From the sequence record OR620964.1: 64,000 bases of DNA; one strand, given 5' to 3'. Below the pieces are notes generated by a model that saw nothing but the letters and a program-made list of their open reading frames with translations, had not been told where the DNA came from and searched no databases. Every line of letters starts with the position of its first letter. Positions within the stretch are counted from its first letter, which is position 1. The position numbers and the translations under genes were made by a program. Positions 1,858-59,708 of this stretch are shown here, piece by piece.

Positions 1858-4800
1858 TTATACGTCTTTCGACTTGGATTGAGAAACTTTGATCTTCTCT
1901 AAGCCTTTAACTACAGACTTCAGGTTGGTAACAGCATAACCTGCTTTGATGATCTTGTTGATAAGTGTCTTAGCCTTAGGCACAGATGACGTAAAGGTAA
2001 TCCACATACCAGCAGACTTCTCAAACGTACCGAACTTACGAGTGTTCGGAATTTTCTTACCTACAAAGGTACGCATTTGTGGGTTAGTGTTCAGGTCAAA
2101 CATGATACGCAGACGGTCTTCCATCACCATTGGATAAGCCTTAACGTGCTTCTTATCCATTGCTGTTTTGTGGCGAACCAAGAAGAATTGCTTCAACTGT
2201 GATTGCAACTTAACAGCCTGACGATAGTTGAAACTCATCATACCTTTATCGGAGAAGCCATCTTGGATGAACTCAAGGCGTTTCAGTGATGGGTTATCAA
2301 ACTCATACTTCTTCTCTACATAGTCTAAGAACTTGGTGAAGTCTGCATAGTAGAAGCAATCGTAATAAACGTAATCACCGAACTCCACGAAGTCAAACTC
2401 TTTCATGGCTTTCGCATCAGGGTCTGTAGCATCCGCGTACAACGCAATAAAGCCGTTGTATATAGTAGGAGTCAGATCCAATGCCATATCGGCGCCACCA
2501 GTATCTTCCGTAGCTTTAGGCTTAGTGCTACGGCGAACTGTGTTATCCAATGGAGGCAATGCTTTAGATACCTTGCGCACTTTGGCAGCGGCTTCTTTAA
2601 CACCGTCGTTCGCTGGCTTACCTTCTTTCTTATTGACAGCACGTTTAGCAGCACGGGCAGCTTCGCGTTCTGTTTGCGCCACTTTGACACGAGTATCAGC
2701 AGTGGTAGAAGTTTCGATTTCGTCTTCAATAGAGTCATCAACAGATACTTTGGTTGTCTCTGTATCGATACGCTTACGATCCTGCTCGGTTGCCCAAGGC
2801 TTACGGACTTTGAAGAACTGATCCAGATCAGCTTTACCTACTTTCCCAGCAACGTGCACCTTAGTAGCAGGGATAGAGATTAACTCTTCTGTTCCAGCCA
2901 TACGAACTCGAACTGTACTGATTGGCGCGTCTACTTTCAACTTGCCATTCACCATACGAACGTTAATGCCTACGATAATACCATTACCAAACTCAGTCAC
3001 AACAGGCATACGATGAAGTGCGTTCTTTAACATTTCACCATCAGAGAAGTTGTGATTACGTGCCCAATCCAACAGTCGAACAAGTCCCCAGCCATGACGG
3101 TCTGGAATGTGCTGGTTAGCAACAACAGGGAACTGGTCAATCGTTTTGAATGAACGCAATGGCGCCACAGGAGTCAATGGTATCATAGCAGCCACAGTAG
3201 ACTTACGCATTTCTGCGAACTCTGAGGTCTCAATGTCATTCAAGTCACGCTTGGCGAGGAAGTAGTCTTGGAAGTCTTCGATGGTATTATTATCCACCAG
3301 CAGACTCTTACTCATCTTGATTGGTTGCAGTTCGTATTCATCGAGTTTGGCATAACGATCATTGCCCTTCTCGTCGAATTGCGTCTTCTCAATTGTCTTC
3401 CACATCAGTCGTGCAACTTTACCAACTTCCAGAGTCTTGTTGGTCATGATCCAGTCGATGAATACCAGTTCACGTTTCATATCACCCGGACGACCATCTT
3501 CATCCAGTTTTGCAGCAGATACATCTGGACGGAAGATACGCGCAGTAGACTGGTCATAAACACCTGGTGACCAAGGAGTATCTACACGAATAATACGACT
3601 ACCCATCTGCATGTTATGGCCTTCACTAATTGCTTGCTCGTTTGCAATCAAGATCTGAACATTTGGGTTCGTCTTAAACGCATCAAGGTTAGCAACTTTA
3701 TCTTGGCCTAACTTACCGACTTCGCCATGGAACAGCACAGCAACTTTCTTGTACTGGTCAGGCAGGGCATTATACACGGCGTTAGCAGCACGGGTATATC
3801 GGGTGAACACAATCAGCTTACCCTGTATTTCTTCTTTCCAGTAATCAGGATCTTCTGGTGGTGGAGTCATGGACGGAGGAAGGTCAAGACGTTTATAGCC
3901 ATCTGACTGCTTACGTGCCATGTACTTGATACCGTTATACATAGCGATATCATACTCACGAGGCGTTACGCCAGGCTTCCACTGGAAAATCTGGTGGGAA
4001 CGTTCTTCGTTATCACGCTCTGACTGTACTTCGAAGTGCTTACGGATACGATCAATAACAGTCAGAACTTTAACAGAGGTGAATTCTTTTACCCCAGCCT
4101 GTTCGAATGTCTCACGCGCTACGTCATCACCCATAGGGTCAGTCAAAAGCATTTCGATACGCTGGAAATACATATTCAGGTCAGCATTGGATGCCAACAG
4201 GCTACCCAGCACATCACCTTCTTCCAACTCATCTTCATCTATATCAGACTCTGCATCATCCTTAGATGAGGAATCATCGTCATCGTCATCACCACTAGAT
4301 TTCTTCTTAGTGTCTTTGGCTGCCTGATCCAACAGTTCTAACATTTCCTTATACATAGCATCATAAACTTGCTGGTGTAGTTCGGAGTTAGGAACAGATG
4401 GATCAGAAATATCAACCGATAAGAACGTATCAATTGGGTTCGGTAACATGAATGCCCAGTTTTTACGCTTATAGCTAATGAATGCTGTATGGTTAGACAG
4501 ACGCGCATGAGCACGACGAATCATAGCCAGACGGCCATCACCCTGATCTGCGATATCCAAGTTATCACCGAAGATAGCTGGTGTTAACAGAGCGGCTTGC
4601 CCAACAACGTCAGATACCAAGTCAGTAACCAATGTACCTGTAGCAAGACGTGCATAACGAATAGACGGAGCAGTGAAGATCGATTTCGTATTGAAGTGAA
4701 CAGCAGAACCAGACTGGCCACCTTGATAGTTCTTAACCTTGTGGCTCTCATCCAGCAGTACATAGCTGAAATTGAAGCGGTTGATAAACTCAACTGCACC

Positions 4801-7800
4801 ACGAATACGAACACGCACACCACCAACGTCAATGTTCATAACAGCATTAGCCAAGAAGCTAAGGCCAGCAACAAAGATAGTGTTCAACGGGGCTTGAGTG
4901 ATAACATCGTACAGACGTTCTTCACCCCAAGTGTTCACTGTATCAGAAGTGATAGGAATAGCATTCCAACCATTCATGATCTTATGCAGGTCATCACACC
5001 AGTTAGCAACAAGGTTTGTAGGACACAGAATCAGAGGACGAATGTTCTCTTCTCCAAGCTCCTCAAGCTCTTGCATCATGGCTGCGATATCAGTCAGACC
5101 AAGGATAGTGTTGTGAGACAGATAACCTTCTGCGTGATAGGTATGCGGACCTGGAACAGAAAGGTCGTACACCCACTTCAAGCCACTTCCATTAACAACA
5201 CGGTCTACCGGTATCCATACTTTGGTCGCAGACTCTTTGATAGCTAACCAGTCACTTTCAACTTCCTGCATAACCGCTTCATACACTTCTGCTCCATAAA
5301 GAGAACAGATAGCATTAAGCATACTGTCAAGTAGCTGGACTTTGTAGTTAGTGAGAACGTTATTCTCACAGTACAGATGGTCGAATCGCTTATTCATGCC
5401 TTTGCGCAGAACATCTTTGAGCGAACACACGCCTGTTGTCTTACGGCCAGTTTCACCTAAACGTAAATACGTATGTCGTGTCAGCGCAGTTGCGATACGG
5501 TCCAGAATTTTATTCGTCAAGTCACCTAAAGGCTTCTTGTTGAAAGGTCCGTGTACAGTACGATTAGTATCCTGCAACATAGTGCTACGAGATTCAGAGT
5601 AGGCAATACCTGCATCCAGTTGACCACGTTTGTGTGCAGATACAAAGCCTACACAGTCGCGGAACATTCTCATGTTCTCTTCGTGTTCCCACAAACCAAG
5701 CACGTAAGCAGTCACTGGTCGTTTTGCTTCTGTGTTGGTAGCATGTTTAATCTTCTTGGTAATAGAGCAATAGATGCCCATATTGTCCAGCAGAGATTTA
5801 ACATCGTACACGAGTTTCTTGCTGATCGAGCAATACGACCCGCGAAGACGACTGCCATTAGAACTTTCGGACAGTCTAATAGAGCCATCACCTTCGAACA
5901 TGGTGGCTAAGAAAGCAGACTGATAAATCTTAGGTGCACGTTTGATGCACTTAGGAATAACATGATCAGCCGATTTAGGATAGCCTATTAACTGATGCAG
6001 CCAATAACCAACAACACGGTGATTACGAACAGCATTAACACGTTCGTCAGAGTAAAGTGTCTCAGGCACATAACCAAACACTTTCTCATATAGAGAAGAA
6101 ACGTTAGCCAAAACGTCAGGACAATCGTTGCTTACAGAACACATACCGTTCGGACCGCAGTTACCTTCCGATACTACGTAACCTAAGAAGGCAGCCAGTT
6201 CTACCGTCATACGTGTAGGCAACTTACCGCCTAAGGCACGGAAGTCCTCAACAGTGCGCTCAAGCATGTTATGGTCGTTCATTAGCTGACGACTATCAAA
6301 CTGAGGAACAGTTGTAGCGTAAAGGTTAGCGCCTACAGTTTTCTGCAAATACATACCAACACGCATCTCATCCATGCGCAGGAACTTCTCTTTCCCGCTA
6401 GTAGGATCGATTGTCCAGAAACGGTGTTCGTTCAACGCATCCAGAATAGTGCCATCGTGCAGCTCAACTTTAGTGCTGGTAGTTGCTTTGCGTCGATACA
6501 CATAGTCCGTAGTGCGCTTACCGTTGTCGGTCATCACTGAGACAGCAAGGGGTCGAAGTTTGCCGCGAGTCTGATCGAAATCGTGGTCTAGAATCTCGTT
6601 CGCACTATCGCCCTCAGACCACAACTCACCTAAGTTAAGAACTCCTAGGTCTGTCGAAATTCGAGTGGTTTTGGTCTGACACTTGCCGCCGCCTGGGGCT
6701 ATAAACAGAACAGCATACTTAGGACGACGACGCAACGTTTGGTGAGCACCCAACTGGTGAGGCATTAACGCAGTACCTTCTTTCAGCCCTGGGATACGAA
6801 TATCGTCAGCACTAATTGAAGTATCAGGTTTCAGTCTCTCAACTTCTTCCTCCGCAGCAGCGAAGATCTCCATGCTACGTGGGATTACGCGAGAGAACAG
6901 CGCACAGAACGGAAGAACGATTTGTTGCACACGCACAGCAGAGGGTGCAGCCGCAGATGCAGCAAGAGAACTGAATACCTTCTTACGATCTGCTTCAAGC
7001 ATAGCAGTACATGCTTGACGGAACACAGCACCACCGAAGTAGTTAGCAAGTTGTCCCATGTTAGCCAGAGTAGATGTCTTACCCATACGGAAATAATGCG
7101 TATGGTTCTCCATTGACTCAGCAGCAGCTTGAACACTACCAAGCTCACGCATAAGGCTTGCGTTCAGGTTAGATCCACGGAAGCCACCAGCATCATTCAG
7201 TGTACGAATCATCGAACGCATTAGCACTTGACTTACAGGGAGTGCTTCTGCAACTGTGAAGTCATTTTCAATAATGCCTGCATACAGATTGTTGTCATAC
7301 TCACTATCAGACAGGTTAGAATCAGGCCCATCGTATCCCATGTCTTTACGTGCATTAGACATCAGAGTTTTTACATCAGGCACAAGTTTCTGATCAAACA
7401 TGTACTGGTAGGTTGCACATACCTGAGACAAGATAGTAAGTAAGTCACCTGAGCCATCAACTTTCTCAAGCGTAACAGATCCTTTACCATCAACAGATGA
7501 GATAAGACGACCGTTACCTGCTTCACCTTTAGCGGAAGTCACATAAAGCTCATCAGCAAGTTCATAGCTTTTCTGGAACAGCCCGTTACCTGCCATCGAC
7601 GTAATAACAGTAGTAACATCACGGAAGTTAGGAGATTCACCAGGCTCTGCAAAATCATAACCTAAGATATCAGCATTATCCAGTGCGGTTGGAGCCTTAG
7701 CACCAACAGTACGTGTAGACGTTACTTTGATACCACCACCGCTTGACGTATTCACAAGCATTGCGAAGTCAGGGTCAACGCCGATGCAGATGTTACTGAA

Positions 7801-9234
7801 ACGAGATAAGGATTTAGCAGTACCTTGCATTTCCTGATCGATATCCAGATTCTCTTCACGGGCAACAAACAGACTTGAACGAAGTGTATCATGCTCGGTG
7901 GATAATGGAATACCACGGTCGAACAGAGTTTCAAGTACACCATTTAGTGTATGCTCATACTCTTTGACCATTTCAACATCAATGTCATCACGCTTAGGCA
8001 AGCAAGCCATTGTACCGTTAGGCATAATGGTAAGCTCATCTGGCCCAGCAAATGTCTCATGCACTGCATAGCCAAACTTCTCACGTAACTGCTTAAGCAT
8101 AGGCAGAACAGTTGCAGAAGTAACATAACGTGGGATGTTAGCACGACGGTTAACACCAGAGCGGGAAGAGCCGCTAACACGCATGTAGTATTCGCCCCAG
8201 GATTGGAACCAACGATAGAGACACATCAAACTAAGGTCTGTGCTACCTTGGCAGATATACTCAACGAATTCCTTTTGTAGGCTTAATACAATGCCGCCTT
8301 CCACACGGACGTCTACTGCTTTTGAAACGTCATTGATTTCAACAGGTACATCTTTACCAATCTTAAGCGCTTGGAGTTTACGATCAAGTAACTGCTTAGA
8401 GGGAACAGAACGCAGACCAAACGAGAAGAAGTCGCCTAATTGTTCAGCGCTCGCTTTATCGAAGTTCTCAAACAGGTTGATCTCAACACGATTCAGTGAT
8501 GGATGGATAGATTGCAGAACGTTATTGAGAGCCTGCCAGTTAAAGTCCAGCGGGATACGAACCATCTTAGCAGCAAACAGATTTGTTTTACCACGAGGCT
8601 GACCGAAGATTGCTTCGTGAATCTGATTGGCAGCGCGAATAGCATTCTGTGCAATATCAGCAGAGTACACAGTGACTTTCATCTTCTCAAAGTCACTACC
8701 TGCTTCCATACGTGGGCGATTGTCACCCTGATCATTCAGTATGTTAAAGTTACCGAACAATGCAGCACTGGATGCAGCACAGGGTGTGCCGGACATGATG
8801 ATATCTTTACCACCATTATACTTACCGCTATTCTCGACGATGATACCAGCAGTGTTACTCATATTGGCACCGAGTAACGCTTTAACTTCTTTCATCATCT
8901 TACCGTCTGCCAGTGTAGCTTCAATCAAGCCAACACGGGATTGCAGTAACGTTTCGAAACGACGTGCGAACTGAGGCTCATCTACTTCCAGAATATCCTC
9001 TAGCTCAGGTGTATTTGCCAGAATCCAGCAAATGATATCAAAACAAGCTGTTACACGAGCAACAGTTCGTGCTTGAAACAAGCCCATCTTTTCAAATACC
9101 CAACGGCCTTTACCTGCTGGATAGATAGATTCAAGTTTCTTCTCTAACTCAGTGGGTAGGCTGTGGATACTCAACGCAGATTGAATAGACTCAACAATCT
9201 CAGCGCTGCCAGTCTTTGAAGTGCTGATTAACAT
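1858..9234 (-). CDS. Large SNF2/SWI2-family SF2 ATPase precursor containing one intein (~1934 aa after splicing)
   Basis: Walker A APGGGK/T split by the intein; motif II LLDESHKVKN; III LATGT; IV KLIVFTRY; V-VI ISEGHNMQ...DTPWSPGVYDQSTARIFR. Confidence 0.9.
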   Translation of the reverse strand: MLISTSKTGSAEIVESIQSALSIHSLPTELEKKLESIYPAGKGRWVFEKMGLFQARTVARVTACFDIICWILANTPELEDILEVDEPQFARRFETLLQSRVGLIEATLADGKMMKEVKALLGANMSNTAGIIVENSGKYNGGKDIIMSGTPCAASSAALFGNFNILNDQGDNRPRMEAGSDFEKMKVTVYSADIAQNAIRAANQIHEAIFGQPRGKTNLFAAKMVRIPLDFNWQALNNVLQSIHPSLNRVEINLFENFDKASAEQLGDFFSFGLRSVPSKQLLDRKLQALKIGKDVPVEINDVSKAVDVRVEGGIVLSLQKEFVEYICQGSTDLSLMCLYRWFQSWGEYYMRVSGSSRSGVNRRANIPRYVTSATVLPMLKQLREKFGYAVHETFAGPDELTIMPNGTMACLPKRDDIDVEMVKEYEHTLNGVLETLFDRGIPLSTEHDTLRSSLFVAREENLDIDQEMQGTAKSLSRFSNICIGVDPDFAMLVNTSSGGGIKVTSTRTVGAKAPTALDNADILGYDFAEPGESPNFRDVTTVITSMAGNGLFQKSYELADELYVTSAKGEAGNGRLISSVDGKGSVTLEKVDGSGDLLTILSQVCATYQYMFDQKLVPDVKTLMSNARKDMGYDGPDSNLSDSEYDNNLYAGIIENDFTVAEALPVSQVLMRSMIRTLNDAGGFRGSNLNASLMRELGSVQAAAESMENHTHYFRMGKTSTLANMGQLANYFGGAVFRQACTAMLEADRKKVFSSLAASAAAPSAVRVQQIVLPFCALFSRVIPRSMEIFAAAEEEVERLKPDTSISADDIRIPGLKEGTALMPHQLGAHQTLRRRPKYAVLFIAPGGGKCQTKTTRISTDLGVLNLGELWSEGDSANEILDHDFDQTRGKLRPLAVSVMTDNGKRTTDYVYRRKATTSTKVELHDGTILDALNEHRFWTIDPTSGKEKFLRMDEMRVGMYLQKTVGANLYATTVPQFDSRQLMNDHNMLERTVEDFRALGGKLPTRMTVELAAFLGYVVSEGNCGPNGMCSVSNDCPDVLANVSSLYEKVFGYVPETLYSDERVNAVRNHRVVGYWLHQLIGYPKSADHVIPKCIKRAPKIYQSAFLATMFEGDGSIRLSESSNGSRLRGSYCSISKKLVYDVKSLLDNMGIYCSITKKIKHATNTEAKRPVTAYVLGLWEHEENMRMFRDCVGFVSAHKRGQLDAGIAYSESRSTMLQDTNRTVHGPFNKKPLGDLTNKILDRIATALTRHTYLRLGETGRKTTGVCSLKDVLRKGMNKRFDHLYCENNVLTNYKVQLLDSMLNAICSLYGAEVYEAVMQEVESDWLAIKESATKVWIPVDRVVNGSGLKWVYDLSVPGPHTYHAEGYLSHNTILGLTDIAAMMQELEELGEENIRPLILCPTNLVANWCDDLHKIMNGWNAIPITSDTVNTWGEERLYDVITQAPLNTIFVAGLSFLANAVMNIDVGGVRVRIRGAVEFINRFNFSYVLLDESHKVKNYQGGQSGSAVHFNTKSIFTAPSIRYARLATGTLVTDLVSDVVGQAALLTPAIFGDNLDIADQGDGRLAMIRRAHARLSNHTAFISYKRKNWAFMLPNPIDTFLSVDISDPSVPNSELHQQVYDAMYKEMLELLDQAAKDTKKKSSGDDDDDDSSSKDDAESDIDEDELEEGDVLGSLLASNADLNMYFQRIEMLLTDPMGDDVARETFEQAGVKEFTSVKVLTVIDRIRKHFEVQSERDNEERSHQIFQWKPGVTPREYDIAMYNGIKYMARKQSDGYKRLDLPPSMTPPPEDPDYWKEEIQGKLIVFTRYTRAANAVYNALPDQYKKVAVLFHGEVGKLGQDKVANLDAFKTNPNVQILIANEQAISEGHNMQMGSRIIRVDTPWSPGVYDQSTARIFRPDVSAAKLDEDGRPGDMKRELVFIDWIMTNKTLEVGKVARLMWKTIEKTQFDEKGNDRYAKLDEYELQPIKMSKSLLVDNNTIEDFQDYFLAKRDLNDIETSEFAEMRKSTVAAMIPLTPVAPLRSFKTIDQFPVVANQHIPDRHGWGLVRLLDWARNHNFSDGEMLKNALHRMPVVTEFGNGIIVGINVRMVNGKLKVDAPISTVRVRMAGTEELISIPATKVHVAGKVGKADLDQFFKVRKPWATEQDRKRIDTETTKVSVDDSIEDEIETSTTADTRVKVAQTEREAARAAKRAVNKKEGKPANDGVKEAAAKVRKVSKALPPLDNTVRRSTKPKATEDTGGADMALDLTPTIYNGFIALYADATDPDAKAMKEFDFVEFGDYVYYDCFYYADFTKFLDYVEKKYEFDNPSLKRLEFIQDGFSDKGMMSFNYRQAVKLQSQLKQFFLVRHKTAMDKKHVKAYPMVMEDRLRIMFDLNTNPQMRTFVGKKIPNTRKFGTFEKSAGMWITFTSSVPKAKTLINKIIKAGYAVTNLKSVVKGLEKIKVSQSKSKDV
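5110..6681 (-). mobile_element. Intein with LAGLIDADG homing endonuclease, 524 aa, in the SNF2 P-loop
   Basis: Starts Cys (CQTKTTRI), ends His-Asn (YLSHN), +1 Thr; endonuclease blocks LGYVVSEGN and FLATMFEGDGS; YDLSVPGPHTY block F. Confidence 0.93.
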
Positions 9235-54904: not shown

Positions 54905-56137
54905 ATGGGACGTGGTTTCGATTCCGTTCAAGATAAGCAGCAACGTGATAATCTACGTGAGACTGATATCTTTGAAATTTTATCGCTTTCTCAGAAAGCA
55001 AATAACCAGTGGGTTTCACTGCGTTTCCTTCCCGGTGATTTGCTTCCTATTAAAAAGCACTGGATTAAAATTATGGGTGGTAAGGATAAGGATAAACCAA
55101 TCACTATCCCCCGCATGTGTGTTAGCTTTGACCCTGATAACCAAGAGAAGCCTCTTGAGGGACGTGATTGTCCTTACTGTGGTATTCAACATGGTAATGA
55201 TGAGACAGGCGCTCCTGCCCGTGTAGACTTCAAATACTTAGCTCAGGCGATTAGCCGTGATGCTCAGGAATCTAAGCCACGTAAACTCAAGCCAATGACT
55301 AAGAAAGAAAAGTCAACTGGCAAGAAAGAAATGACTTCTGATTCATGGACTCCTGTAGTAGTCGTGCCTTTAACACCAGGCGTAGCGCGTAAGATCAAAG
55401 AATACAGTGAACGTAACTTCCACGAAGTCAAAGATAAAAAGACTAAGAAGAAAACTAAAACTGCATTCCCACTGTCTCACGCGAAATATGGCCTTGATGT
55501 TGATATCAAGTACAACCCAAAAGCTGCTGGTGCGGAGAAGTATTCTGTCGATAAAGGTGCGCATACGCCTCTGACAGAAGAAGAGTTAGAATATCTGACT
55601 TGGGACTTCGAAGACTGGAATGAGATCTACGACCTGTTAGGCCGTCTGGATACTCAGGGTGCATTGAAAGACTTTAAATCAATGGACGTTCAGGGCCAAG
55701 ACTCTGAATCCGATGATGAAGATGATGACGATGACGATGGCATGTCTCTTGGCAAGAAAAAGAAAGGCGCTAAGGCAGATAAAAAGAAACGTCGTTCAAT
55801 GAAAGATGATGATGATGATGATGACGACGAAGACGAAGATGATGAGCCTAAGAAAAAGGCCAAGAAAACTAAGTCTCGCCGCATGATTGCAGATGACGAT
55901 GAAGAAGACGATGAACCTAAGAAGAAAAAGAAATCTTCAAAGGTGAAGTCTAAGAAATCTTCTAAGTCAGACGACGATGATGAAGACGAAGACGATGAAC
56001 CTAAGAAGAAAAAGAAATCTTCAAAGGTGAAGTCTAAGAAGTCAAAGTCTGATGATGACGAAGACGACGATGCGCCTAAGAAGAAGAAGAAAAAGAAATC
56101 TTCTGACGATGCACCGAAGAAAAAGAAAAAGAAGTAA
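54905..56137 (+). CDS. gp32-like single-stranded DNA-binding protein with long Asp/Lys block tail
   Basis: LRFLPG...HWI...CVSF...CPYC core; directly upstream of recA; ~130-aa charged tail. Confidence 0.7.
   Translation: MGRGFDSVQDKQQRDNLRETDIFEILSLSQKANNQWVSLRFLPGDLLPIKKHWIKIMGGKDKDKPITIPRMCVSFDPDNQEKPLEGRDCPYCGIQHGNDETGAPARVDFKYLAQAISRDAQESKPRKLKPMTKKEKSTGKKEMTSDSWTPVVVVPLTPGVARKIKEYSERNFHEVKDKKTKKKTKTAFPLSHAKYGLDVDIKYNPKAAGAEKYSVDKGAHTPLTEEELEYLTWDFEDWNEIYDLLGRLDTQGALKDFKSMDVQGQDSESDDEDDDDDDGMSLGKKKKGAKADKKKRRSMKDDDDDDDDEDEDDEPKKKAKKTKSRRMIADDDEEDDEPKKKKKSSKVKSKKSSKSDDDDEDEDDEPKKKKKSSKVKSKKSKSDDDEDDDAPKKKKKKKSSDDAPKKKKKK
55904..56040 (+). repeat. Perfect 53-bp direct repeat, two copies, 84-bp period, in the SSB tail
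   Basis: 55904-55956 and 55988-56040 are identical and encode EDDEPKKKKKSSKVKSKK. Confidence 0.85.
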
Positions 56138-56204: not shown

Positions 56205-59200
56205 ATGGCAAAAGCAAAGAAAGAAAAGAAAAGCAAAGCTACAGAGCTTGCTGACGTTGGTATTGTTGCAGCCCTAGCATTCGATATGAGTGCTATGATG
56301 GATGAACAACTTGACCAGATCGAAAAGAAAACAAAAATCAGTAGCCAGAGCATGATGCGTCATGCTGAGCGTGTGTCTACTGGTGCCCTTGCTCTTGATA
56401 TGTATTTGGATGGCGGTATTGTACCAGGCGGCTGGTATACTTTCAGCGGCGGTGAGCAATCTTGTAAGTCAACCATGACAATGAGTATCATGGCTACGCT
56501 TATCAAACTTGCATACTCTGGTATTGCCGCTGTGTTTGACTTTGAAGGCTCGACTGATGCCGATTACGTAGCTGGCCAGTTGAAGACTCACGGCGTAACT
56601 GTTGATCCTAAGACCATATTTGGTGTTAAGGATGATGAGACAGGTGAATGGCTAATCAAGCCTCGTATTCGTTACTACTCTCCAGATAACGGTGAGAAAT
56701 TCTTTGACTACATGAGCATGTTGCGTATCCGCCTGCCTGAGAAAGTTGTAGAGAAAGACGGTTCCGCTTATCTGCTATTTGAGAACACTAACGATAACCG
56801 CAAGAAAGTTGGCGATAAGTACGATAAGAAATGGTTCAGCAAGCACAACCAGTTTAAGGTTCCTGCTGCTGATGGTCATATGCAAGCAATTGCTCTTGTC
56901 GATTCCTATCCAGCAATGTTGCCCGATGCTCTGGATGATGACGATGCTTCTAAAGCAATGGCGATTCAAGCTCGTATGTTCTCTGATGGTATCAAGCGTA
57001 TTCGTGGTGGCATGCGTCGTAAGATGATTACGATTGTTGGTGTTAACCAATTACGCCAGAAGCCTGCTACTATGTTCGGCTGCTTGCATGGATCTACGCA
57101 GGTACAGTTCGTTGACGGTCGTGTCCATACCATGAAAGACATAGTTGATCAACGCATTGAAGGTCAAGTGTGGTCTATCAATGAAGAGACACGCGCTATT
57201 GAAGCACGTTCAATCATTGATTGGCATTACAATGGTGATGTTGAGCATAAAGACCATTGGATGAAGATCGTTACTCGCTGCCCTGAGACAGGCAACGGTC
57301 AAGCCTTCGTTATCTGTACTCCTAACCATGAAGTCCTGACAGACAGTGGTTGGAAACGCGCAGACGAGGTTACGTTAACTGATCGCATGGTATCTAAGTT
57401 CACTTCTGTTCGTCGTGGTACTGTTTCGCAATTCCTAAATGCCATGGCTGTTGGTGATAGTTCGATTGTATCGGATAGCCCGAATAGCGGTCTGATGAAA
57501 TTGCAGGATAACCTAAACCCTGACTACGTGCAGTGGAAGATGGATAAGCTCGAACCATTCTTTACGTTTGATTCTTACTCTGCTTCGCATAACGGTGAGT
57601 GTTATATTGCTCGTGGCAGCGACTTCGTTGCGTACTCTAAACATGTGCCTGAACGTGAGCCATGGAAAGTTAAGTTTGATGATATGTCGTTTGCTGTGTT
57701 CTACATGGACGACGGTACATTACACGCAGGCTCTTCGGCCAGATTTAGTGTTAAGCGATTCAAGGGTAACGCCAAAGCACTAGCTAAAATAGCTCAGATG
57801 TGGCAGGAACATGGATTTACCGTGAATCATAGCCACGACGATGGTTGTTTCTGGCTGACGAAAGAAGATAGTATTGAGTTCTTCGAGCGCATTCGCAAGT
57901 ACGTGCCTGACTGTATGCAGTATAAACTACCTACTGAGCATCAAGGCTTCTACAAAGAGTTTGAACTGACAGGCGAAGAACACCAACGTCCTGTATATGT
58001 CGAAGTGATTCGTACTGAAAATGGTAGCGACCGTGCTTTCCGAATGAAAGGTAAGTATGATATCTCGGTTGAGCATAATCATAACTACATGGTTGGCAAT
58101 AGTAAGAACGGAATCGTGGTACATAACAGTCCCGAATACGAGCCATGTGGGGACGCCTTGAAGTTCTACTGTTTTGCGGAAGATACTCTCATTCGCACAG
58201 ACTGTGGCCTGATGACTGCGCCTCAGATGATGAACGTAATCGATCAAGGTGGTAGTTTTGAGATCGAGACGTTGAATGGATTCAGCCCTGCTGCCAAAGT
58301 CTGGCGTGTTGAAGATGCACCGTATCCAATTCTTATTGATGCATCTGGTCATACATATACAGGCAGTGCGCAACATCGCCAGCTTGTGTTTGTTGCAGAT
58401 ACAACGGATAAGAATGAAAGCGTAATGCGCACAGAGTGGCTAACGCTTGAGAAAATGGCTACAGAAGATCGTCCGTACTTCGCTGCAATGCGTTTCGCTT
58501 CTCTGGAAGAACTGCAACAAAATTGCCCAGATGATTATGATGAAGCCCGTGCTCTGATCCTTTCACTGCTTCTGAGTGTTGCACAAATATCGACTCGGTC
58601 TATCTCTATCGGAACAACTCTTGATGGGCGTGTTCTGGAAGAGAAAGGTACTGTTGTTTCTTTCCGTGACGTTAGCACAAACCTTGTTGTACGTGCATTC
58701 TCTAACATCGGCATCATCGCACTGGCACAAGAAGAGAGTGTATTAATTCCTGCGCTAGACGCGACTGAGTTAGGTACGATTGTATCAAACGGTATCACTC
58801 CTGAACAAAGTTCAATGCAGCGTAGTCTAATGATGCAATTGGCTATTATGGATTCTATGCCTGAGTTGGCTCGATTCATTACTGACTTCAATCAGAACAT
58901 ATTCCCTAATGCGCCTGTGTATCTTGATGATAACGAGCGTCTGGCATTTGTGCTTGATGAAATTCGTATGCATGAATATGTGTTTAACGAATATGCAGCG
59001 GCGTATGATGCGATCCAGTTCCAGTTGGCTTATGTAGAAGATTTCTATCAGTTCTGTGGTAACATGGTTCCTGTATCGTGCTCTCTGCGTGTACTGGAGA
59101 AACCTACTGTCTTCTATGATGTGAACGTACCAGAGACAAGTGTTGTTATCACTAATGGCTTTGTTTCGCATAACAGTGATGTTCGTGTTCGTCTGGCTTC

Positions 59201-59708
59201 ACGCGCTGTGCCTGAGGGCTGGACTAAACTGAAAGACGCGCCTGGTATTGTTGGTGAAGATTCAGTAACCGTTGAAGGTGGTACAGACCGTTACCGTTTC
59301 ATCGCAGGCAAGACTATCAAGAACAAGATGGGTGGTATTCCTAACCAACAGACTTGGTTCCGTCTGTGGGAATCTGATGGTGATGGTGTAGCGCGTGGGT
59401 TCGACCCAGTGTTTGACACATGGCACTACATGAAAACTATCGGTCTTGTTGCAGGTCCGCGTAAGAAGATCAAGTTCCTCAAGCCGTGCCCATTAGCTTC
59501 TGAGAAAGCAGTTGATTGGCAGGAATTCAGAACGTTGATTAACGGTGATAAGAAACAGATCACTGATATCTGTAAGAAACTAGGTGTTAAGCCACAAGGC
59601 TTGCGTCTATGGTGCTTCAAGTTCTTGCGCTCCGCTCAAGGTAAAGAACGACTTAAGGCAAGTATTAGCCGTAGTGCCAAGAAAGCACAACATGAAGACG
59701 ACGAGTAA
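56205..59708 (+). CDS. recA: RecA/UvsX recombinase precursor with two inteins (~483 aa after splicing)
   Basis: STGALALD, Walker A GGEQSCKS, FDFEG, Walker B LVDS, QAR, VNQLRQK..MFG/SPEYEPCGDALKFY/SDVRV. Confidence 0.93.
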   Translation: MAKAKKEKKSKATELADVGIVAALAFDMSAMMDEQLDQIEKKTKISSQSMMRHAERVSTGALALDMYLDGGIVPGGWYTFSGGEQSCKSTMTMSIMATLIKLAYSGIAAVFDFEGSTDADYVAGQLKTHGVTVDPKTIFGVKDDETGEWLIKPRIRYYSPDNGEKFFDYMSMLRIRLPEKVVEKDGSAYLLFENTNDNRKKVGDKYDKKWFSKHNQFKVPAADGHMQAIALVDSYPAMLPDALDDDDASKAMAIQARMFSDGIKRIRGGMRRKMITIVGVNQLRQKPATMFGCLHGSTQVQFVDGRVHTMKDIVDQRIEGQVWSINEETRAIEARSIIDWHYNGDVEHKDHWMKIVTRCPETGNGQAFVICTPNHEVLTDSGWKRADEVTLTDRMVSKFTSVRRGTVSQFLNAMAVGDSSIVSDSPNSGLMKLQDNLNPDYVQWKMDKLEPFFTFDSYSASHNGECYIARGSDFVAYSKHVPEREPWKVKFDDMSFAVFYMDDGTLHAGSSARFSVKRFKGNAKALAKIAQMWQEHGFTVNHSHDDGCFWLTKEDSIEFFERIRKYVPDCMQYKLPTEHQGFYKEFELTGEEHQRPVYVEVIRTENGSDRAFRMKGKYDISVEHNHNYMVGNSKNGIVVHNSPEYEPCGDALKFYCFAEDTLIRTDCGLMTAPQMMNVIDQGGSFEIETLNGFSPAAKVWRVEDAPYPILIDASGHTYTGSAQHRQLVFVADTTDKNESVMRTEWLTLEKMATEDRPYFAAMRFASLEELQQNCPDDYDEARALILSLLLSVAQISTRSISIGTTLDGRVLEEKGTVVSFRDVSTNLVVRAFSNIGIIALAQEESVLIPALDATELGTIVSNGITPEQSSMQRSLMMQLAIMDSMPELARFITDFNQNIFPNAPVYLDDNERLAFVLDEIRMHEYVFNEYAAAYDAIQFQLAYVEDFYQFCGNMVPVSCSLRVLEKPTVFYDVNVPETSVVITNGFVSHNSDVRVRLASRAVPEGWTKLKDAPGIVGEDSVTVEGGTDRYRFIAGKTIKNKMGGIPNQQTWFRLWESDGDGVARGFDPVFDTWHYMKTIGLVAGPRKKIKFLKPCPLASEKAVDWQEFRTLINGDKKQITDICKKLGVKPQGLRLWCFKFLRSAQGKERLKASISRSAKKAQHEDDE
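57081..58127 (+). mobile_element. RecA intein 1, 349 aa, with LAGLIDADG endonuclease
   Basis: CLHGSTQV...VVHN, +1 Ser; CTPNH block B; NAMAVGDSS and AVFYMDDG endonuclease blocks. Confidence 0.92.
58170..59174 (+). mobile_element. RecA intein 2, 335 aa, endonuclease motifs apparently degenerate
   Basis: CFAEDTLI...FYDVNV...FVSHN, +1 Ser; GSAQH block B; no clear LAGLIDADG motif. Confidence 0.9.

Follow-up and report, generated by a model that had tools for sequence, protein, structure and literature searches.

Two inteins separated by a 14-residue extein in the UvsX/RecA-like recombinase of the Yersinia jumbo phage fHe-Yen9-02

Background

The RecA intein at site b, of the Mycobacterium leprae type, is reportedly that of Davis et al. 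1994. According to Table 1 of Topilina et al. 2015 (PMC4513877), it occupies residues 206–570 of M. leprae RecA; the intein of M. tuberculosis RecA lies at site a (residues 252–691), Thermobifida fusca RecA has inteins at sites b and c2, and Acinetobacter baumannii RecA possesses a mini-intein at site d (residues 216–370). The same paper describes a P-loop mini-intein in Pyrococcus horikoshii RadA, for which control by temperature via the exteins was shown experimentally. In the DnaB helicases the intein sites a and c are located two residues apart (Novikova et al. 2016, PMC4760082), and the DnaB protein of M. smegmatis has two inteins, DnaBi1 and DnaBi2 (PMC6195587). Inteins as such, site-b RecA inteins, multi-intein proteins and adjacent insertion points are already known. 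Here we report on a stretch of 64,000 nt from sequence record OR620964.1, in the following called the window, which contains the gene for a UvsX/RecA-like phage recombinase with two inteins. These are termed intein 1 and intein 2, at sites 1 and 2, and are separated by an internal extein of 14 residues, the spacer.

Intein 1 resembles the site-b RecA inteins in its position after the Gly of the MFG motif in loop L2, in the +1 Ser belonging to SPE..., in its length of ~350 aa and in its double-motif LAGLIDADG endonuclease. It is 36–42% identical to the site-b inteins of ~690-aa bacterial RecAs. It differs from them in its host, a jumbo-phage UvsX-like recombinase, and in belonging to a phage subgroup which, judged by its distribution, moves among phage lineages. 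As in T. fusca RecA and M. smegmatis DnaB, two unrelated inteins, both of which must splice, are located in one ATPase of recombination or replication. In these two proteins the inteins lie in different motifs, in the RecA cases well over 100 extein residues apart, whereas in the phage recombinase 14 residues (42 bp) lie between them, within one DNA-binding element. Such tight clustering of insertion points in a DNA-binding motif of a RecA-fold ATPase is reminiscent of DnaB sites a and c. For DnaB, however, co-occupancy is reported for sites b and a and not for the adjacent pair (PMC4760082), whereas both close sites are filled in the phage. Site d of A. baumannii RecA is, compared by residue number only, a few residues from phage site 2, in the ALKFY/ASVR region, but there it is a bacterial RecA that is interrupted, by a mini-intein of 155 aa. 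With P. horikoshii RadA the phage protein shares an intein within a RecA-family recombinase that has to be removed for activity. The conditional splicing of the former is an experimental result, whereas the phage inteins are known here from sequence and models. The inteins in this jumbo-phage recombinase, the family and the site of intein 2, as well as two filled sites only 14 residues apart, appear to be unreported. A shorter natural spacing between two inteins was not found in the literature searched, which does not establish a record.

Results

We read this locus as a phage recombinase gene which acquired two selfish inteins independently of each other, from unrelated lineages and at conserved sites that are adjacent, and estimate the probability of this reading at about 0.8. 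Both inteins are in frame within one open reading frame (ORF), as evident from the ORF list, the translation and a string search (Table 1). A preceding annotation by a model that had only the letters and their ORFs at hand (the first-pass annotation) had placed two inteins at 57081–59174 with a 14-residue extein between them, and the string search reproduced these coordinates exactly. The three exteins add up to 292 + 14 + 177 = 483 aa, and intein-free homologues match this length.

The same annotation had called the gene recA, which holds true for the family only. The host protein has the RecA-fold ATPase core, Walker A and the L2/ALKFY region, and its exteins match the Pfam RecA profile (E 1e-15). 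It is not a cellular RecA, as the exteins match the UvsX-like recombinases of PHROG 97 (E 1e-60) and the DNA matches a jumbo phage. The coding sequence (CDS) fHeYen902_143 of OR620964.1, the 248.7-kb genome of Yersinia phage fHe-Yen9-02 from Finnish sewage, is a 100% match to the window DNA (62000 has to be added to window coordinates to obtain those of the record). By these profile and DNA matches, the host is a jumbo-phage UvsX/RecA-like recombinase, and a cellular RecA is excluded. Database records give the 1167-aa product plain names, i.e. "UvsX-like recombinase" (the only annotation in OR620964.1), "RecA protein" or "hypothetical protein", and do not annotate an intein.

The natural, intein-free protein of Dickeya phage JA13 (501 aa) served as stand-in for the mature recombinase in the comparison with E. 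coli RecA, and the exteins were searched separately. It matches E. coli RecA chains with E values of 1e-18 to 1e-21. In JA13 as well as in phage NCTB (503 aa), both without intein, MFG-SPEYEPCGDALKFY-SDVR is uninterrupted. The boundaries of intein 1 are precise with regard to JA13, NCTB and E. coli RecA, which are all contiguous across MFG/SPE (a slash marks an insertion point); those of intein 2 are precise with regard to JA13, NCTB and the alleles with intein 1 only, in which KFY/SDVR is contiguous. Furthermore, JA13 ...INQLRQKPATMFG/SPEYEPCGDALKFY/SDVRLRM aligns without gap to E. coli RecA ...INQIRMKIGVMFG/NPETTTGGNALKFY/ASVRLDIR, which confirms the earlier assignment of this segment to loop L2, with site 1 inside the loop. 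In standard numbering we take site 1 to follow G204 of E. coli RecA (Gly292, the –1 residue, in the phage protein) and site 2 to follow Y218; the spacer then presumably corresponds to N205–Y218, i.e. the C-terminal part of L2 plus the helix after it. The +1 residue is Ser at both sites (Ser642 and Ser991).

The 14-residue spacer peptide of the window is that of the intein-free JA13. Its Cys, at the position of E. coli G211, is part of an EPCG motif which occurs with this Cys in nearly all intein-free relatives, whereas the Alexandravirus alleles have Gly there, among them the two-intein allele of Erwinia phage pEa_SNUABM_17 (SNUABM_17 in the following). Judged by this distribution the Cys is an ancestral extein residue and not an adaptation to the inteins, and the suggestion that it could add redox sensitivity is left without support.

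With regard to site 2, no cellular RecA with an intein straight after KFY was found among at least 120 KFY-Cys matches in bacterial genome contigs, which is weak evidence. Of the matches listed, 117 were plain Ala-to-Cys changes in cellular RecA, two were chance matches outside recA and one was a phage contig. As an observation in its own right, at least 117 cellular RecAs from diverse phyla thus have Cys instead of the Ala of E. coli A219 (KFYCSVR), exactly at the position of phage site 2.

Extein matches identified this recombinase in 95 phage records of GenBank, for which the intein state was called from how far apart the N- and C-extein matches lie and from parsed CDSs. The Dickeya JA phages, NCTB, PaBG, Lu11, BcepSauron, Motura and others have no intein. 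Homologues of intein 2 occur in 53 GenBank records, and in all parsed or coordinate-listed carriers except the window phage and SNUABM_17 it is the only intein; these carriers include Alexandravirus, Sasquatchvirus Y3, Yoloswag, SNUABM_5, AD1, Sen-NF and Afa-NA1. The only two-intein phages in GenBank are fHe-Yen9-02 and SNUABM_17. Among 44 loci in IMG/VR, 26 are without intein and 16 have intein 2 only; of the other two, one holds at site 2 a different intein with a length of 289 aa, and the second, which is SNUABM_17 itself, has both. Metagenomic proteins provided alleles with intein 1 only (P0010, P0011, P0012 and P0022, as well as P0016 with a mini version of 206 aa) and nine further two-intein clusters (P0002-6, P0008, P0009, P0013 and P0019), two of which, P0006 and P0019, hold at site 2 a different intein of 457–469 aa with a LAGLIDADG_3 domain. 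All four occupancy states were found, i.e. none, intein 1 only, intein 2 only and both. In the cultured Erwinia, Dickeya and Yersinia jumbo phages there are three (none, intein 2 only, both), and intein 1 on its own comes from metagenomes only. A 98.6% identical copy of the two-intein gene of the window was present in an independent run, which would support the stability of this allele.

Some observations on these relatives should be mentioned here. The records of Sen-NF (PV359490.1, 108 kb, Salmonella) and Afa-NA1 (PV550095.1, 78 kb, Alcaligenes) yielded identical recombinase and intein 2 scores, and in Sen-NF the CDSs abut without gaps and include an 'asparagine synthase' and a 'transposase IS605'. 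These features suggest that assembly or annotation is shared or chimeric. In the phage recombinases P0007 and P0018 a third intein site farther upstream is occupied (...HN/SSDQDY and ...HN/STDIAY), which we read as FEG/STDADY of the window protein, at about aa 114–116. Two inteins, in the P-loop and at site b, are also present in four metagenomic bacterial RecAs of 957–1146 aa (P0043, P0107, P0082 and P0118), of which P0082 and P0118 in addition match Pfam HNH_3 (PF13392).

The histories of the two inteins were found to be separate. A profile–profile comparison with hhalign detected no homology between them past the last ~50 residues, corresponding to block F/G (probability 0.7%). Therefore, inteins 1 and 2 represent unrelated lineages. 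An origin of intein 2 as a duplicate of intein 1 was considered and rejected, since the homology is limited to block F/G.

Most instructive are close relatives that differ in one intein. SNUABM_17 has both, its sisters SNUABM_32 and SNUABM_1 are without intein 1, and yet their exteins are 98–100% and their intein 2 sequences 94–96% identical. Around site 1, the DNA of SNUABM_17 is changed with respect to both sisters at positions 0, +3, +6, +9 and +21. The first four changes, all synonymous, turn GGT/AGCCCTGAG into GGC/AGTCCCGAA, which is exactly the flank of the window. The 3' flank AGTCCCGAATA is shared by P0006 and P0011 and lacking in each of ten alleles without intein 1; of this flank, a fifth allele with intein 1, called L106, has only CCCGAATA in common. 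The flank at site 1 of SNUABM_17 looks like a short co-conversion tract which ends well short of site 2. P0006 and P0011, for their part, are 99–100% identical in the exteins and 97% in intein 1, but at site 2 an intein is found in P0006 and none in P0011; their nucleotide differences cluster at –3, 0, +1 and +2 about this site.

These pairs bear on two further proposals of the first-pass annotation, that co-conversion should move both inteins together and that each insertion may alter the homing site of the other. The survey of relatives for alleles with 0, 1 or 2 inteins contradicts the first, as all four states exist, near-identical hosts differ by just one intein, and the two assort independently. 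It also speaks against the second, as the occupancy of one site differs while the other is filled (SNUABM_17 compared to its sisters, P0006 compared to P0011).

Sequence identities, computed with the intein columns removed and the extein segments concatenated, point in the same direction. For intein 1, the identity exceeds that of the host exteins in 26 of 45 pairs, with a lead of up to 20 points, and within its phage subgroup ranges from 54 to 99%. Intein 2 is more similar than the exteins in none of the 45 pairs and follows them closely (Mantel r 0.89, p 0.0005). On these identities intein 1 is an element which crosses host lineages, and intein 2 one which tracks the host tree. L106 is a 9.2-kb contig (JAVWLC010000071.1) of a metagenome-assembled genome labelled 'Raoultibacter sp.'; its recombinase has two inteins and is Alexandravirus-like, and the contig is almost certainly a piece of a jumbo phage that was binned wrongly. 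At the nucleotide level, intein 1 of L106 is 99.2% identical to that of SNUABM_17, compared to 78.5% over the adjoining 1.6 kb (spacer, intein 2 and C-extein). By the position of the break in identity, within 12 nt of the end of intein 1, L106 shows recombination between the two inteins.

Intein 1 matches the Pfam family Intein_splicing (PF14890) with an E value of 1.7e-13 and 51 bits (cut-off 35.8) and the LAGLIDADG endonucleases of PHROG 11023 with 2e-5. The Pfam domain LAGLIDADG_2 gave only a weak match in the window intein (E 0.023, under the cut-off), and PF03161 is precomputed for most of the homologues among the matches listed. In total 293 homologues were obtained, with RecA-family hosts throughout among the matches listed, and the insertion site is the same in all 87 that could be parsed. 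In the alignment of these 87 members Cys1, TPNH, both endonuclease motifs and the terminal HN are conserved, the acidic LAGLIDADG motifs (...AVGDSS and ...YMDDG) to at least 90%. Many of the homologues are located in bacterial RecAs of ~690 aa that read ...MFG/C...HN/SPETTTGG..., with the intein starting near residue 204–206. This agrees with residues 206–570 of site b in Table 1 of PMC4513877, through which M. leprae itself is known here, and bears out the placement of site 1 at the M. leprae position in the first-pass annotation. Judged by this common site, intein 1 is a member of the widespread RecA site-b family. Its ratio of non-synonymous to synonymous substitution rates (dN/dS) is 0.12 between the window and SNUABM_17. 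Taken together with both LAGLIDADG motifs, which are kept with their acidic residues intact, and with the lateral distribution, this argues for an enzyme that is active or was so recently.

A different picture was obtained for intein 2. Cys1, the block B motif GSAQH, block F/G, the terminal HN and the +1 Ser are invariant among its 15 members, and a search with each of these 15 yielded no Pfam or PHROG family match for the intein. The family is tiny, as 1.84 billion proteins yielded four representative clusters. With the family alignment as input, an AlphaFold model reached a predicted local distance difference test score (pLDDT) of 85.8 and a predicted template modelling score (pTM) of 0.86. 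It superimposes on the NpuDnaB and VidaL inteins with Z 16.6 and a root mean square deviation of 1.9–2.0 Å over 128–129 residues, and on the endonuclease-bearing TliVMA intein with Z 16.6 over 221 residues; the best Foldseek match is PI-PfuI (E 2e-7). Based on the modelled structure and the motifs, we are confident in assigning intein 2 to the class-1 Hint inteins.

The insert domain of intein 2 (intein residues ~109–296), when modelled alone, had a pLDDT of 82.7 and consists of one alpha/beta unit followed by a helical bundle. Its fold matches, WhiA (Z 6.2), the C-domain of ArgR (Z 5.3), the endonuclease region of TliVMA (Z 4.9) and I-DmoI (Z 4.6), are all under the reliability level. Two LAGLIDADG half-domains with catalytic acidic residues were not found in intein 2, only one alpha/beta half-domain of weak similarity. 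In the window the candidate LAGLIDADG-like helix ends with Q, at a position which varies in relatives (D, K, G, A or R). From the model and these replacements, the insert is quite probably the decayed, inactive remnant of an endonuclease. Its dN/dS values are 0.07–0.26, those of the N-terminal Hint part 0.03–0.17.

Table 1. Position of the recombinase gene, its exteins, inteins and splicing or endonuclease motifs in the window
Feature	Position	Strand	Evidence
UvsX/RecA-like recombinase precursor, 1167 aa + stop, Yersinia phage fHe-Yen9-02	56205..59708	+	PHROG, Pfam, CDS match
N-extein, aa 1-292, end ...QKPATMFG	56205..57080	+	alignment; 70-78% identical to Erwinia/Dickeya jumbo-phage N-exteins
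Intein 1, aa 293-641, 349 aa, CLHGST...VVHN, class-1 type	57081..58127	+	Pfam, PHROG, motifs
Intein 1, Cys1 (C293)	57081-57083	+	motif
Intein 1, block B TPNH (T372-H375)	57318-57329	+	motif
Intein 1, LAGLIDADG motif 1	57432-57467	+	motif
Intein 1, LAGLIDADG motif 2	57690-57722	+	motif
Intein 1, terminal HN (H640-N641)	58122-58127	+	motif
Internal extein (spacer) SPEYEPCGDALKFY, aa 642-655, 14 residues	58128..58169 (42 bp)	+	string search, alignment
Intein 2, aa 656-990, 335 aa, CFAEDT...VSHN, class-1 type	58170..59174	+	motifs, AlphaFold model
Intein 2, Cys1 (C656)	58170-58172	+	motif
Intein 2, block B GSAQH (S721-H724)	58362-58376	+	motif
Intein 2, middle domain, without recognisable endonuclease motif	58494-59057	+	motif, profile and fold searches
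Intein 2, block F/G, end VSHN (H989-N990), then Ser991	59109-59174	+	motif
C-extein, 177 aa, start SDVRVRL	59175..59705	+	PHROG 97, E 1.6e-15; 71-76% identical to relatives

Discussion

Each of the two inteins has the full class-1 set of Cys1, block-B (T/S)xxH, terminal His-Asn and +1 Ser. With both sets complete, excision of the two inteins and ligation of the three exteins are to be expected. The 1167-aa precursor would release both inteins and join exteins of 292, 14 and 177 aa to a recombinase of 483 aa, and splicing would restore the DNA-binding element of L2 and the following helix which the inteins split. The ligated protein is evidently the functional product, for which both inteins must splice, because the exteins are under strong purifying selection (dN/dS 0.01–0.15 in intein-bearing lineages) and the spacer is that of JA13. 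In the precursor and in both half-spliced forms L2 and the helix would not be a continuous element; judged by the position of the sites, these forms are therefore probably inactive. Intein 1 would be the mobile one, spreading laterally among phage recombinase alleles whether site 2 is filled or empty. Intein 2 would be an old resident of the jumbo-phage clade, inherited vertically, with its decayed and probably inactive LAGLIDADG remnant still under constraint.

Several points weigh against this reading. That both inteins splice we infer from the intact motifs and the purifying selection on the exteins, and the states of the endonucleases, active in intein 1 and dead in intein 2, are deduced from motifs and folds. 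L106 was rejected as a proof of homing, as its tract of high identity already stops 12 nt within intein 1 and the contig does not extend to the upstream boundary. When the window is compared with SNUABM_17, the dS of intein 1 is 1.7, similar to that of the exteins, and thus gives no indication that these two particular phages exchanged it recently. Finally, purifying selection on the insert of intein 2 is unlike what would be predicted for a decaying selfish endonuclease. This constraint may come from folding or splicing needs or from some retained function.

Such a retained function is part of an explanation in which the recombinase is a zymogen with two keys. One or both inteins would then splice conditionally, for instance in response to single-stranded DNA, redox state or temperature, the recombinase would be switched on only at a fixed stage of infection, and the constrained non-endonuclease domain of intein 2 would have been domesticated as the sensor. 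Consistent with this are the low dN/dS of the middle domain (0.07–0.26) in spite of lacking endonuclease motifs, the retention of intein 2 across several phage genera and the position of both inteins, which divide the DNA-binding element of L2 and helix. Conditional splicing also has precedents in the P. horikoshii RadA intein (PMC4513877) and in mycobacterial DnaB inteins (PMC6195587). However, alleles without intein, with intein 1 only and with intein 2 only persist in close relatives, which shows that both inteins are dispensable; the spacer Cys has no link to them; and the constraint on the insert could stem simply from the needs of folding or splicing of the precursor. We therefore regard this explanation as unlikely. 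The specific case in which a domesticated, clade-fixed intein 2, sensing for instance DNA, and a mobile intein 1 together form a two-step post-translational switch of L2 appears doubtful, too; if true, it would time recombination-dependent replication.

Far less probable than the independent acquisition of two selfish inteins, which we prefer, is that they form a linked unit in which each alters the homing site of the other and both move by co-conversion. The sites are just 42 bp apart, and the window, SNUABM_17 and about ten metagenomic alleles carry both inteins. Yet all four states and near-identical hosts differing by one intein exist, the changes in the 3' flank of SNUABM_17 (+3 to +21) stop short of site 2 (+42), intein 1 alleles with 71–75% identity are paired with intein 2 alleles only 35–41% identical, and the two inteins show opposite phylogenetic behaviour. 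The targets of LAGLIDADG enzymes extend over roughly 14–40 bp about the insertion point, and therefore a site 42 bp away would fall outside the recognition region. That the insertions do not splice at all and leave an inactivated recombinase or a fusion with permanent inserted domains, as the single 1167-aa product annotated in GenBank could be taken to indicate, is very improbable, too, since neither intein has lost any of its catalytic splicing residues, purifying selection on the exteins is strong, the spacer is identical to that of intein-free JA13, and the frame is open over 3.5 kb in the window phage and in every relative examined.

Two unrelated inteins flanking a 14-residue extein constitute a natural substrate for questions of splicing order and interference. 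As four occupancy states exist, some of them in near-identical hosts, homing, the length of co-conversion tracts and the homing cycle become testable by phage crosses. Intein 2, as a clade-restricted unannotated family with a constrained non-endonuclease insert, provides a small and concrete case for the debate on selfish versus domesticated inteins.

The surroundings of the recombinase gene deserve mention, too. In the phage record, an SSB (single-strand DNA binding protein) gene and a sigma-factor gene are located upstream. The former is the directly neighbouring gene (window 54905–56137, + strand) and is annotated as single-strand DNA binding protein; the C-terminal third of its product, ~130 aa, consists of poly-Asp/Glu runs alternating with poly-Lys runs. 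Further inteins may be present in this phage. Beyond the window, candidates were noted at 199860–200837 and 177170–177706 of the record, and within it an ORF for a SNF2-type helicase of 2458 aa (window 1858–9234, – strand) also contains an intein, with LAGLIDADG_3 at aa 1105–1167 (E 1e-7), and is matched weakly by Intein_splicing at aa 914–1375.

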